Below are positions 48,601-51,704 of a DNA stretch of 64,000 nt, piece by piece. A program made the translations under genes and the position numbers. Location: the IMG/VR virus record IMGVR_UViG_3300046787_000408, positions 186,001-250,000 of that record. One strand, written 5' to 3'. The first letter of the stretch is position 1, and each line of letters opens with the position of its first letter. Below the pieces are notes generated by a model. That model was not told where the DNA came from, searched no databases, and worked only from the letters and a program-made list of their open reading frames with translations.

Positions 48601-49814
48601 AATTCCGTAGCCCTGGTGGCGACTGGCTGGACAGCAACTTTGCCAATATTGAAAACACCCTGTTGCGTTTTACTGTGGCCCTGAGTGCTGCTATCAACCC
48701 CGAAGCGTACCGCAAAGAATACTTGACCAAGCTGTACAAGTTGTTGTCTGAAGGCATGGCGGACAAGAGTGACGTAAACGTTATTCAGTTGTTCTCCAAC
48801 TATTCGGCTGGCGAACTAGACAAACCTGCCTTGATACGTCAAGTGCGTCAAAAGCAATTGGCTCGCAATGTTGCCAAGGGCAAAACCACTGGACCAATGT
48901 GGTGGGATGTTTCTAGACCAGGATACATGAGCAGCATCGAAGTTGTTGCTAACAGCAAAGAAGAAGCCATTGATGTTGCATTACAGCCAGGCAATTATCC
49001 AGACTGGGCAAGTGCTAGAAATACATTACAAGCTAAACCATTACGTCCATACGAGGCACCCAAGACAAAAGCTGCTGAACCTGCTGCGGACAGTCAAGGC
49101 AACTGGGGACTCTGGATGGCTTACAACAATCGCTTTATTAGACAACCAGGACAGATAGACTATAACGTTATACGTAGATTCCCTAGCCAAGCGGCTGCAA
49201 TGGCGTTCTTGGAGAGAACACGAGAAGAAAATCCCAACATGCGAACAGACGTTGAAGTTCGCGAGATTCCTGCAGACTACCAGTTAATTAGTACACCTGC
49301 GGGCAGACCAGCTACACCGCCTGTTAACCGCAATACGCTAATGCCAACCGGCCCTGGACCTTGGGAAGTGTTTAGAATAAGCGATGGGTCAAGTGTAGCA
49401 GAATTGGGACAGACCAACCGTATGGGTGCTGAAGTAGAAGCTCGTAGAGTAATTGATCAACGTCGAGAAGCTCCAGAACTGTATGGTGTGCGAACCATTA
49501 GTACTCCAGTTCCTGGATCTACAGTAGATCTGCAACGTCAACGAGCAGCACAACAAAATGACCAAGCACAAGGTGGCATCGTTGATGTAGCTGGCGAACA
49601 GCCAACAGCACCACGCACATTAACTACTCCAGGACAAGCACAACAACAGTGGACCGGTGAGTGGTTGGTGCTAGATCCCAACGGTCGTGAATTACATAGA
49701 TTCAGTGGCATTGGCAATGTACAAGCTGATGCCAATAGACACGCTGTTAACTGGTTACGAGCACATCCTGGCGCCATGCAAGCAGGTGTTACAGTGGTTC
49801 CGGAGATGGCATAA
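45624..49814 (+). CDS. polyvalent protein: Pol-beta nucleotidyltransferase + HExxH metallopeptidase + amidoligase-like + C-terminal modules
   Basis: GSNAGFTY..SDIDLH; LAHELTH..ENEANA; GMEFE/DGSL/GLEFVSP/TGLHINIS/IEFRSPGG. Confidence 0.8.
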   Translation: MNTAELDSYSLDDAVKFNQDLNPRLWHKQRMRPEVREKLLEIAADFKQSLGLSDLEVKDITVSGSNAGFTYTPHSDIDLHLVVDIPQADTSDVYRELFDAKKYQYNAEHNITIGGYDVELYVENANQPPVSQGMYSLVKDDWINIPKRRRSTVNDDAVRSKYGDLKHRIQTAVDSKDHEQISAMAAKIKKMRQTGLARSGEMGPENLAYKMLRAQGYIKKLYDARTAARDLELSLTERKKKKKRVRYGFWSPGFAFGDGDSGDGGGGGESIQEVSVTPDGVSPSTKMFLEQDSAKDVDVLKSFARYVSGELGLAKIPKIIIKRKPEWSEQNGSFGQYVPELNQLTLSLHGRHIVDVLRTLAHELTHAHQQQTTGIPDNGGDTGSEFENEANARAGEFMRHFADTHPEYFDSRTLGESSGYIPTAAEKNDPRFVMALSPDVQPGATGKNANRMSLKTDAQGRPQQARTNGLVESMSREFAKFQSKEEPWDRDSYEPPGPEFEPQMPAGTTEIDVKDLTDWYRLGMDISDMDDAKPEDYNQGPPDTVVTFASDELEQTYLKQMKRLGLKTKDLDPDVKGGVDVSDQHQPKEDLLEIKMTGKNLRAEAAKTGAQAGMEFEMIVPNTETDVEPEYEPDMDQDQRTRSFSDIRDFFHDGDYNGRRQVDNLMDELIGEYEEWKQEQTAEQWDRDGVDYMRDFIEVNELFDRDEAMLQARADVVAANPDLPPESEDFTQLLTARLDELQEQFVLESFEAGGRIYNDAFETFAEEQNEEYDERSFLDDRYTYMSDIQSNFDISWPYYIDINDGQGGDMDIDQVADEFSSYMGKPVNASRQYHGGRREAGTYVVEPDGSLEGDNPGDGGLEFVSPPMPIDEMISDLNKVKSWADKTGCYTNDSTGLHINISVPDYSIDKLDYVKLAILMGDEYILDLFGRSGNTYAKSAMGKIKSALKQKPEAAAQIMDLMKQGLDGAATKAIHTGITDKYTSINTKTGYIEFRSPGGDWLDSNFANIENTLLRFTVALSAAINPEAYRKEYLTKLYKLLSEGMADKSDVNVIQLFSNYSAGELDKPALIRQVRQKQLARNVAKGKTTGPMWWDVSRPGYMSSIEVVANSKEEAIDVALQPGNYPDWASARNTLQAKPLRPYEAPKTKAAEPAADSQGNWGLWMAYNNRFIRQPGQIDYNVIRRFPSQAAAMAFLERTREENPNMRTDVEVREIPADYQLISTPAGRPATPPVNRNTLMPTGPGPWEVFRISDGSSVAELGQTNRMGAEVEARRVIDQRREAPELYGVRTISTPVPGSTVDLQRQRAAQQNDQAQGGIVDVAGEQPTAPRTLTTPGQAQQQWTGEWLVLDPNGRELHRFSGIGNVQADANRHAVNWLRAHPGAMQAGVTVVPEMA

Positions 49815-50623
49815 TGAGAGCACAAGAATTTGTAACAGAACTGTTCCAACCAGGCAAAGACTGGAAGTGGAGTTTTCAGGGCAGTGAAGAAGCAGTAGCA
49901 GTATTCCATGTAGGCGAAGTTCCATACATGTTTCATGCTTATGGCGCTGACGGTGAATGGGAAGCAGAGTTCAAACGACACGGTAGCAAACTGGATCGAT
50001 TGCAAAAATTTGGACTAACTGGTACTGGAAACTCAGCAGAAGTTATGAGCACAGTGGTTGACATTATGCGAGCGTTCCTGGAAAAGTACAAAGACAAGAT
50101 ACAAGTGTTGTCGTTCAGCGCCAAAGAAGATTCACGCCAGGGCCTATATGCTAGAATGGTCAAACGACTGTTACCTGACTGGACCATGAAACAATCTGGT
50201 GAGCACTTTGTTCTTGTGGCTCCCAGACAAGATGTTACAGAAACCTGGGGAATTGAAAAATACGCCATTCCCTTGCCCATTGGTGACTATCTTGATCATG
50301 ACGAACACGATTTTGCTCCCCCGGGCAATTACAAAGATGTCGGCATCCTGCACGACGAAGTGTTTGACTTGATTGATACTGGGGCAGAGCCAGACGTTGT
50401 GCCTGCTGACGCCAAACAGTTGCTGGCCACTCAAGACTGGCTGACCAATGCTGGTGGTGACGGACCGTTGTTTGACGAGTACCCGGACAAGCCTGTGGTA
50501 TATGAAAAAGCTGGTAAGTACTACATTCTCGACGGGCATCACAGAACCACACGAGCTTGGAAAATGGGCAGACCCATCTCAATATACCTGTTTAGGGACG
50601 AACAATTAAAGGAATTTACATGA
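49814..50623 (+). CDS. two-module protein with C-terminal ParB/Srx-like domain
   Basis: MRAQEFVTE start; LLATQ..PVVY..YYILDGHHR. Confidence 0.75.
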   Translation: MRAQEFVTELFQPGKDWKWSFQGSEEAVAVFHVGEVPYMFHAYGADGEWEAEFKRHGSKLDRLQKFGLTGTGNSAEVMSTVVDIMRAFLEKYKDKIQVLSFSAKEDSRQGLYARMVKRLLPDWTMKQSGEHFVLVAPRQDVTETWGIEKYAIPLPIGDYLDHDEHDFAPPGNYKDVGILHDEVFDLIDTGAEPDVVPADAKQLLATQDWLTNAGGDGPLFDEYPDKPVVYEKAGKYYILDGHHRTTRAWKMGRPISIYLFRDEQLKEFT

Positions 50624-51291
50624 ATCCAAATTTTGACAACGAAGAATACGATGACGAAGCCGGCATGGCTGACAACAATCTTGAAACATTAAAACGTGCA
50701 GTTGAAGGCATTGATGATGTAATCAATGCAGGCGATAACTTGCCCGAATGGTGCCAAGAAAAGATTGCTGTGGCCAAGTCAATGCTGGTTGCAGTATGGG
50801 ACTACATGCGAAGCGAAGAACAGCGTGGTGACGATTCTGATTCAGGACCTGACGAGTTAACTCGTGTGTTAGAACTTAGTGGTATTGGAATTACAGAAGA
50901 TCTCAATGCTGATCGACAATTTGATATCATTGAAGAAATGGTTGAGCAACTGGCACTAGAGCACGGAGTTGATGCTGAACAAATCTGGGAAGACTTTGAA
51001 TCAGTAGACGACCATGAACTGTACGAAACTGCTGCATGGAGACGCAAAGAAGGCAAGAGCAAGAGTGGCGGCCTCAATGCCAAAGGTGTTGCTAGCTATC
51101 GTAGAGAGAACCCTGGTTCAAAACTGCAAACTGCTGTGACTACCAAGCCAAGCAAACTCAAGCCAGGATCAAAAGCAGCCAAGCGCCGCAAATCATTCTG
51201 TGCTAGAATGGGCGGAGTCAAAGGTCCAATGAAGAAGCCCAATGGCAAACCTACACGTAAAGCTCTAGCTCTACGTAAATGGAACTGCTGA
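50620..51291 (+). CDS. modular protein, acidic modules plus basic C-terminal module
   Basis: LPEWCQEKIA module; AAWRRKEGK..GGLNAKG..RRKSFCARM..ALRKWNC module. Confidence 0.75.
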   Translation: MNPNFDNEEYDDEAGMADNNLETLKRAVEGIDDVINAGDNLPEWCQEKIAVAKSMLVAVWDYMRSEEQRGDDSDSGPDELTRVLELSGIGITEDLNADRQFDIIEEMVEQLALEHGVDAEQIWEDFESVDDHELYETAAWRRKEGKSKSGGLNAKGVASYRRENPGSKLQTAVTTKPSKLKPGSKAAKRRKSFCARMGGVKGPMKKPNGKPTRKALALRKWNC

Positions 51292-51292
51292 T

Positions 51293-51499
51293 ATGCGAGC
51301 AAGTGAATTTGTAACTGAAAACTTTGCTGATGGCAAAGTAAAGGGCAAAAGTAGGCCTGGACGTGTGAAACGTTCGGGCGCTAGCTGTTCAGGAAGTGTT
51401 ACAGATCTACGTGCAAGAGCCAAAAATGCATCAGGCGAAAAAGCCCGGATGTATCATTGGTGTGCAAACATGAAATCAGGTCGCAACAAAAATAAATAA
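51293..51499 (+). CDS. small basic protein, putative internal protein
   Basis: MRASEFVTE start. Confidence 0.75.
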   Translation: MRASEFVTENFADGKVKGKSRPGRVKRSGASCSGSVTDLRARAKNASGEKARMYHWCANMKSGRNKNK

Positions 51500-51503
51500 C
51501 ACT

Positions 51504-51704
51504 ATGCGAGCACAAGAATTTATTGCTGAATCGGTTGCCCCAGGGTTCAATGTGTACTCAGCTCGAGTACGAGTCAAGAATCCCATGTACAACACCAGCA
51601 TTGATGTGGCTGTGTTTGCAAAGAGCCCACAGATGGCTCGTGTATTGTTACAAGCTCAGTATGGCAAGGACAGTACAGTATCTGATGTGACCAAGATTGC
51701 TTGA
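51504..51704 (+). CDS. small protein, putative internal protein
   Basis: MRAQEFIAE start. Confidence 0.75.
   Translation: MRAQEFIAESVAPGFNVYSARVRVKNPMYNTSIDVAVFAKSPQMARVLLQAQYGKDSTVSDVTKIA

Follow-up and report, generated by a model that had tools for sequence, protein, structure and literature searches.

A T4-like N-terminal tag on unrelated proteins of an uncultivated jumbo phage is a probable capsid-targeting propeptide

The stretch of DNA analysed here (64,000 nucleotides, referred to as the window) comprises positions 186001 to 250000 of the linear IMG/VR record IMGVR_UViG_3300046787_000408 (G000:C1), a phage sequence of 299,983 bp that is about 81% complete and has a G+C content of 45%. 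Its genes are densely packed and lie predominantly on the plus strand, no tRNA genes were found, and the products encoded by the phage include tail-fibre-like giants, DnaJ, an AAA+ protein that resembles ClpB, a fatty-acid desaturase and a ferritin-like protein. The subject of this study is a short N-terminal tag with the consensus MRAxEFIxE that begins five open reading frames (ORFs) of the window, several of them in a cargo operon at 45.6 to 51.7 kb (Table 1). The operon is headed by a gene for a protein of 1396 amino acids (aa), and from this gene onward the stop-start junctions overlap or abut (TAATG, ATGA), suggesting translational coupling of its five genes.

The tagged N-termini had been pointed out in a first-pass annotation, whose readings at 49814 (269 aa), 51293 (68 aa), 51504 (66 aa) and 27925 (95 aa) proved exact, while the 378-aa ORF at 26792 also starts as it had been given. 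The same annotation had likened the tag to the phage T4 sequence MKTYQEFIAE, which was confirmed both in the T4 record and in the literature (PMC8442874). In that record, the internal proteins IPII and IPIII start MKTYQEFIAE/A, where the slash, here and below, marks the known or predicted cut, and IPI starts MKTFKEFTST. MKTYQEFIAE is the T4 capsid targeting sequence (CTS), which is removed by a single cut and then leaves the head (PMC8442874). Genetic analysis of the CTS has shown that residues 4 and 7 (Y and F) serve chiefly in targeting and residues 8 and 10 (I and E) in processing, and that an E10D mutant is still packaged with processing blocked, so that targeting is separable from processing; CTS-like tags on diverse proteins are regarded as a general device of T4-like phages (PMC9026906).

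Table 1. Coordinates and make-up of the tagged and associated genes. Positions are those of the window, except in the last four rows, which give start positions in the record (G000).
Feature	Position	Strand	Description
Leader MRAQEFVTE	49814..49840	+	Predicted cut after E9, before conserved LFQPGK
269-aa cargo protein	49814..50623	+	Leader, DUF6934-like N-domain (~residues 10-145), variable C-domain, here ParB/Srx-like (YILDGHHRTTRAW)
223-aa protein	50620..51291	+	No MRA leader; acidic N-module, basic C-terminal DUF6321 module (E 8e-22)
68-aa protein	51293..51499	+	Leader MRASEFVTE (51293-51319), very basic NFADGK.. module; isoelectric point (pI) 11.1, 2 Cys
66-aa protein	51504..51704	+	Leader MRAQEFIAE (51504-51530), 57-aa basic module without Cys
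95-aa basic protein	27925..28212	+	Leader MRANEFISE (27925-27951), KWSKKYKRSIxCS module, CTKDCSGHRAGY module; pI 9.5, 4 Cys
378-aa protein	26792..27928	+	Degenerate leader MRANQFISN, no E9
68-aa basic protein	58088..58294	+	Shorter leader variant MKMRDIME (58088-58111), then TTTAG; pI 10.2
1396-aa polyvalent-type protein	45624..49814	+	Head of cargo operon; nucleotidyltransferase (NTase)-like N-domain, KK-/Gly-rich linker, HELTH zincin motif (nt 46707), amidoligase domain
Tag copy MRAREFMAE	78323 (G000)		Outside window
Tag copy MRAREFIRE	78688 (G000)		Outside window
Tag copy MRASEILRQ	79070 (G000)		Outside window
Tag copy MRANEFLNE	165249 (G000)	-	Outside window

A scan of the whole genome for the leader, as had been proposed, was run with the pattern M-R-A-x-[EQ]-F-[IVLM]-x-E and added four copies elsewhere in the genome to the five ORF starts of the window, giving nine in all. 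Positions F6, I/V7 and E9 of the tag are near-invariant. From the composition of the proteome, 7e-5 tagged N-termini and 0.017 occurrences at any place would be expected. Six strict matches were seen in the whole genome, every one at residue 2 of an ORF. The occurrence of the tag is non-random, far beyond chance. After trimming of the tag, the only proteins of this genome that resemble each other are the paralogous pair at 78323 and 78688, which upholds the earlier statement that the tagged proteins are otherwise unrelated. The leader strings were not found in the searched literature (Creative Commons-licensed PMC articles and bioRxiv).

The cargo of the window consists of a DUF6934-like and probably ParB/Srx-like protein, a DUF6321 protein, three small basic proteins (pI 9.5 to 11.1), the 378-aa protein and the 1396-aa protein. 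In the 269-aa protein, Pfam DUF6934 was matched with an E value of 7.8e-5, under the Pfam cut-off, and the C-terminal half matched ParBc_2 with an E value of 0.0085 (16.7 bits against a cut-off of 23.6) and contained a DGHHR motif; its Atlas neighbours include ParB_N and ParBc_2 clusters as indirect hits. A profile search of the PDB with this family returned nothing significant. The AlphaFold2 model had a predicted local distance difference test (pLDDT) score of 55, with low confidence in the C-terminal half and disorder over residues 1 to 16, which include the leader. The ParB/Srx-like identity that had been proposed for this C-domain is weak. The description of several of the proteins as small, basic and Cys-containing fitted those at 27925 and 51293, and for that at 51504 it fitted in basicity and failed for Cys; the 57-aa module of the 51504 protein matched solely viral clusters of unknown function. 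In the 1396-aa protein, Amidoligase_2 was found over the cut-off (E value of 4e-6, 27.3 bits) and NTP_transf_2 weakly (E value of 0.006). None of the Pfam peptidase models matched this protein, and its HELTH region is homologous to stand-alone HExxH proteins.

Three looser variants of the leader had also been suggested. The one at 58088 was borne out, as homologues of this protein start MRIKEIME/NASVG, MKMREIME/NASVG or, in canonical form, MRAQEFIKE/NASVG. The one at 58694 was not, since its N-terminus is a conserved segment specific to its own family. For the one at 26256, the sole homologue found (in contig L040) aligns just from query residue 11. Directly after the 58088 gene and overlapping it lies a gene for a ferritin/Dps-like protein (window 58257-58697, plus strand; Pfam Ferritin E value of 2.7e-23).

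For the 269-aa protein, 373 homologues were found by homology and not through the tag pattern. They agree at about 85% identity in the N-terminal DUF6934-like module, which is joined to C-domains of NUDIX, GNAT, NTase or ParB-like type. Before the LFQPGK sequence the leaders read MRAxEFVTE, MKIHEIVTE, MKIHEIIEESVTE, MRSNEFIKESTITE, MLIRE, MLIKE or MRITE. They vary between 5 and 17 residues in length, and all of them end in [ILV]-x-E directly before this common mature start.

The same signal recurs inside longer proteins. Most homologues of the 269-aa protein run on into a C-terminal 58-aa basic NFADGK module, which in the window is a separate gene with a tag of its own (51293, MRASEFVTE/NFADGK). 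Among the non-redundant junctions, the residue before NFADG was E at P1 in 53 of 53 and P3 was L, V or I in 49 of 53, and the rule held whether a ParB-like domain, NUDIX, bare DUF6934, a glycine linker or the tag lay upstream. In the 223-aa protein, L-Y-E (nt 51019-51027) precedes the DUF6321 module (ELYE/TAAWRRK), and elsewhere this module follows the leader directly (MRAYEFINE/DW, MRAHEFIDE/SAAWRRK) or follows L-D-E, V-N-E or I-N-E. Both modules of the 27925 protein are likewise found elsewhere after the leader or after I-T-E, V-A-E, L-N-E or L-E-E. A homologue of the 26792 protein in the related contig L068 starts MKVNEFIIE/GVAGPKKCWPG, and the window copy has an insertion between its leader and TSE/SVAGPEKCWPG. 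Finally, the 1396-aa protein aligns from residue 235 (LTERKKKKK; L-T-E at nt 46326-46334) with stand-alone HExxH proteins that start MRAxEFITERKKKRRK, the alignment beginning at leader position 7, which marks L-T-E as the place where a tag once ended. Together, these junctions make it probable that the cut signal is reused between modules. The acidic N-module of the 223-aa protein (window 50620-50830; EYDDEAGM..NLPEWCQEKI) recurs within proteins of about 630 aa (MSFF.NLN; G000 75966-77858) that are encoded just upstream of a tandem tagged family in this phage and in many relatives; it is another shuffled module.

The genome also encodes the expected partners of such a signal. The head module, which lies outside the window, includes a small acidic core protein, a protease of the gp21 family (Peptidase_S77, PF03420; G000 34640-35272), a 364-aa coiled-coil scaffold-like protein and a gp23-family capsid protein, with the genes for the protease, the coiled-coil (gp22-like scaffold) protein and the gp23 homologue in this order. 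The protease scored over the cut-off (E value of 8.4e-25) and aligns with T4 gp21 (PDB 5jbl) across GEVDHPD and SSRGSG, with the His and the Ser kept. The capsid protein (E value of 6.4e-98) aligns with mature T4 gp23* from about residue 39. The His and Ser of the protease are presumably the gp21 catalytic pair. In the capsid propeptide of six phages of the group, L-x-E is invariant at residues 5-7, 17-19 and 40-42, the last of these near the aligned start of mature T4 gp23*; these sites are as predicted by a T4-like L/I-x-E specificity, and the capsid protein would be cleaved at such sites. Beside the capsid gene, at G000 38429-38959 on the minus strand (L005:3369-3899), there is a gene for a 176-aa protein that starts MLIE/DVIPE, like the short MLIRE leader variant, and that shows a GNAT-like QRQGIS motif by eye, which makes it a possible further packaged enzyme. 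Between this gene and the capsid gene lies one for an HNH-like endonuclease.

To survey the tag among environmental phages, IMG/VR was scanned with a degenerate DNA pattern of it. The pattern occurred in at least 120 contigs with 155 matches, and among the matches listed 152 of the 155 were placed where an ORF plausibly starts; for the same pattern in 596 Gb of bacterial genome contigs the figure was 35 of 122. Many of these 35 were recognisable phage families binned into metagenome-assembled genomes, and the bacterial scan yielded mainly chance matches and no reliable host. All five large tag-bearing genomes (293 to 525 kb) contained Peptidase_S77 and three to five strict tags each. When ten contigs were picked by capsid similarity alone, five of the six of at least 116 kb carried two to four tags and the smaller fragments none. 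Reversed-pattern controls gave no matches in either the large tag-bearing genomes or the capsid-chosen contigs. In Vibrio phage D479, which is of T4 type (S77 E value of 7e-83), a DUF6934 homologue starts MISFREHLTE/S, a ten-residue tag of T4 format.

The nearest cultured phages by capsid protein (61 to 66% identity) are PA5oct, Vibrio phage 2.275.O, Sinorhizobium phage Phosso, Serratia phage BF and Xanthomonas phage XaC1, all jumbo myoviruses. Relatives of the capsid protein were present in at least 598 IMG/VR contigs, and the best 80, which were kept, are 80 to 99% identical, indicating that the clade is abundant in the environment. Lake samples are among the sources in which these phages abound. 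Neither a megablast search with window 45-52 kb nor a tblastn search with a 126-aa tagged protein produced a match among GenBank phages.

The 153 tag-trimmed proteins (142 from IMG/VR and 11 from this genome) fell into about 30 unrelated clusters. PHROGs and Pfam returned nothing for the majority of the cargo proteins. The commonest family (81 of the 153) comprises proteins of about 125 aa with a YxxYRxGxA motif, an invariant S-x-E and a conserved C-terminal SPVKxFKGY, which occur in two to four tandem copies per phage; the AlphaFold2 model is largely disordered (pLDDT of 67), and the family may be the clade's counterpart of the T4 internal or core proteins. A tandem pair of these paralogues is encoded outside the window at G000 78323-79068 (L002:2323-3065). 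Elsewhere in this genome a GNAT-like protein of 288 aa is tagged, and tagged proteins in relatives contain GH19 lysozyme-like (seven proteins), GNAT, ADP-ribosyltransferase, ParB_N and LysM domains, with NUDIX and the zincin of polyvalent proteins as further module types. Polyvalent proteins are large multidomain proteins of phages and conjugative elements that are predicted to be packaged and injected, and their domains include zincin-like peptidase, ParB-like, GNAT, ADP-ribosyltransferase, lysozyme, NTase and similar types (Iyer, Burroughs, Anand, de Souza and Aravind 2017; PMC5512222). The repertoire of the tagged cargo is that of packaged polyvalent proteins, and it recalls T4 Alt. A role of the cargo in host takeover or anti-defence, as the first-pass annotation had suggested, is a reasonable inference. 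In two related contigs (L016:2992-3609, plus strand, and L063:3861-4493, minus strand) the tag is followed directly by a twin-arginine signal (MRAVEFIAE/IDRRGFLGALGAGAMAAAG), which in one member was matched by Pfam TAT_signal with an E value of 4.6e-5; cleavage of the tag might expose this signal, and the injected protein might then be exported again, into the new host's periplasm.

On this evidence we consider it likely that the tag is a T4-like capsid-targeting propeptide that is cut after E9 by the prohead protease and loads ejection or effector proteins into the head. The T4-type reading put forward earlier draws support, at the level of sequence, from the likeness to the T4 peptide, the head module, the kept [ILV]-x-E and the packaged-effector type of the cargo. 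Late in infection, the tagged proteins would bind through the tag to the scaffolding core of the assembling prohead. Cleavage behind the final Glu by the gp21-family protease would follow, at a site with [ILV] as P3 and E as P1. The mature proteins would remain inside the head alongside the DNA until injection, when they would pass into the next host cell. Where [ILV]-x-E lies between the modules of larger polyvalent proteins, the protease probably dices these into separate basic or enzymatic modules.

Several observations weigh against this reading. The [ILV]-x-E motif carries little information (the 1396-aa protein has 19 sites against 17.6 expected), and the E before NFADG could simply be part of that module. 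Cleavage cannot be universal: the 26792 leader ends ISN without a P1 Glu, and homologues of the 51504 protein begin MKAQEFITR or MKAQDFLNP, so that E9 is not kept throughout that family. Leader proteins of this kind might be packaged uncut, by analogy with T4 E10D. The cargo operon is not adjacent to the head genes. Copies of the T4 late-promoter box TATAAATA number nine in the genome, about as many as by chance, and none stands before the cargo operon, giving no support for the timing of expression. MRAxEF starts are absent from the five nearest cultured phages, so that published virion proteomes are of no use for this tag, and no phage in culture was found to carry it; PA5oct has a single loose candidate, MKIKEIILE, in a protein that its annotation does not flag as a virion protein.

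Those members that lack E9, together with the T4 E10D protein that is packaged yet uncut (PMC9026906), speak for the alternative that the tag directs proteins to the virion or prohead and stays on, or that it targets the portal, neck, tail or baseplate instead of the scaffolding core. We regard this as unlikely, since [ILV]-x-E is kept before the mature start in leader variants of every length and at internal junctions, which is hard to explain without cleavage, and since the motif fits both what the encoded S77 protease would be expected to cut and the L-x-E sites present in the capsid propeptide.

That the shared N-terminus has no role in the virion and instead governs the start or coupling of translation, acts as an N-degron or stability tag, or serves as a regulatory peptide of co-regulated genes seems quite improbable. 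In many tagged genes the start overlaps or directly adjoins the preceding stop codon (ATGA or TAATG), six of the nine leaders start ATGAGA, and a common short tag could give shared regulation. However, codons differ at synonymous sites (AGA or CGA for Arg, GAA or GAG for Glu, TTT or TTC for Phe, and further ATT, ATA, GTA or TTA) and the DNA upstream of the tagged ORFs shows no conservation, so that selection acts on the peptide, in which the amino acids E5, F6, I7 and E9 are what is conserved. The near-identity to a T4 peptide with an experimentally defined capsid-targeting role, and the presence of the matching protease in all tag-bearing genomes, also speak against it. The variation in the DNA bears equally on the still less probable idea that the conserved 5' end is a functionless recombination handle or a remnant left when cassettes were shuffled among hyperplastic loci. 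The cargo modules are clearly shuffled between contexts, but a handle acting at the DNA level would conserve nucleotides, and the peptide is kept across relatives chosen by the major capsid protein (80 to 98% identity) and also, as a tag of T4 format, in Vibrio phage D479 of T4 type, indicating purifying selection on the peptide itself. Chance or a gene-calling artefact, for which only the shortness of the motif speaks, is refuted by the six to nine copies observed where 7e-5 are expected, by the contrast in ORF starts between the IMG/VR and bacterial matches and by the empty reversed controls.

With the capsid-targeting propeptide as the preferred reading, a wider proposal can be made, tentatively and with rather more doubt than confidence. 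The tag and the [ILV]-x-E junctions might form a modular 'address, dice and inject' arrangement that lets the prohead protease load and cut a rapidly shuffling arsenal of at least 30 effector families from polyvalent precursors, and cleavage might expose new functional N-termini. If this proposal were right, the tag would make it possible to list the injected effectors of hundreds of uncultivated phages from sequence alone. Injected proteins are hard to recognise from sequence, and the tag, taken with the known specificity of the protease, gives a direct listing of candidate ejection or effector proteins and predicts their mature N-termini. Of all phage products, the head proteins that are injected encounter host defences first, and T4 IPI*, for example, blocks the GmrSD restriction enzyme.

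Some other genes of the window were recorded in passing. Just upstream of the cargo operon, a radical SAM protein is encoded (43555-44691, plus strand; E value of 3.4e-10) beside a weakly glycosyltransferase-like gene, and directly after the operon lies a minus-strand island (51705-57691) with a lipoprotein-like ORF of 79 aa, a fatty-acid desaturase (E value of 4.9e-12), a DUF4337 protein and a 758-aa protein whose N-terminus, as judged by eye, is hydrophobic and signal-like; the island looks like a set of host-derived auxiliary genes. Adjoining chaperone genes at 38024-41133 (plus strand) encode DnaJ (J domain and DnaJ_C) and a 757-aa ClpA/ClpB-like double AAA+ protein. Two adjacent plus-strand genes at 17870-18763 and 18779-20308 encode proteins of 297 and 509 aa that share a near-identical N-terminus (MTSAINPNNI.G.YPV.GQDNN.QGFRD) and diverge afterwards; as a guess from the neighbouring giant structural genes, they may be fibre or receptor-binding proteins with a common attachment domain.

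Set beside known systems, what we describe is probably the T4 capsid-targeting system, already known as such, in a distant clade of uncultivated jumbo phages with an altered consensus and a larger, modular cargo. As in T4, the tag is located at the extreme N-terminus, has 9 to 10 residues and is carried by unrelated and often small basic proteins. The E-F-I-x-E core is common to both, the 51504 copy having QEFIAE identical to that of IPII and IPIII, and the F that serves targeting and the I and E that serve processing in T4 are kept in the tag of this phage. The hydrophobic P3 and the Glu at P1 fit the specificity of gp21, and the genome has a gp21-family protease, a gp22-like scaffold and a gp23-type capsid protein. 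In contrast to T4, the consensus MRAxEFIxE is one residue shorter and has Arg-Ala in place of Lys-Thr-Tyr, so that Tyr4 of T4 has no aromatic counterpart here (Ala3). The carrier is an uncultivated jumbo phage of about 300 to 370 kb whose capsid protein is nearest to those of PA5oct-like phages and not of Straboviridae; there are at least nine tagged genes per genome and about 30 cargo families that include enzymes and modules of polyvalent proteins, and the cut signal is also found at internal module junctions. The T4 capsid-targeting peptide would on this showing be far older and wider spread than the T-even phages, which is relevant to T4-style protein-packaging technology.

The ADP-ribosyltransferase Alt of T4 is a packaged, gp21-processed and injected enzyme. 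It resembles the present cargo as an enzymatic effector delivered from the head, and one tag-bearing relative has an ADPrib_exo_Tox domain. The propeptides of Alt are, however, not CTSs of the internal-protein type, and the ADP-ribosyltransferase-bearing protein is encoded in a related contig and not in the window.

In phages of phiKZ type, the propeptides have the cut-site motif S/A/G-x-E. The jumbo phages phiKZ, 201phi2-1 and SPN3US likewise fill the head with numerous ejection proteins, and proteases of the gp175/gp245 type, which are distant relatives of gp21, remove the propeptides of these and of inner-body proteins by cutting after Glu (PMC5694885, PMC7411985, PMC10052503). The phage studied here is not of that lineage. 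The phiKZ-type cut sites have very few determinants past the P1 Glu, and the propeptides there are longer and diverse, with no single short tag. Propeptides of the phiKZ type were considered as a model and rejected, since the protease and the capsid protein are of T4 type and the cargo has one common short tag.

The closest parallel to the cargo itself is with the polyvalent proteins, whose make-up appears to be shared by the 1396-aa protein and by many tagged relatives. For polyvalent proteins, a metallopeptidase domain of their own has been proposed as the processor and no N-terminal address tag has been described (PMC5512222). The modules found here differ in that they carry the T4-type tag or are joined at [ILV]-x-E. 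This feature implicates the prohead protease in their processing and suggests that polyvalent proteins are processed by it, and not only by their own peptidase domains.

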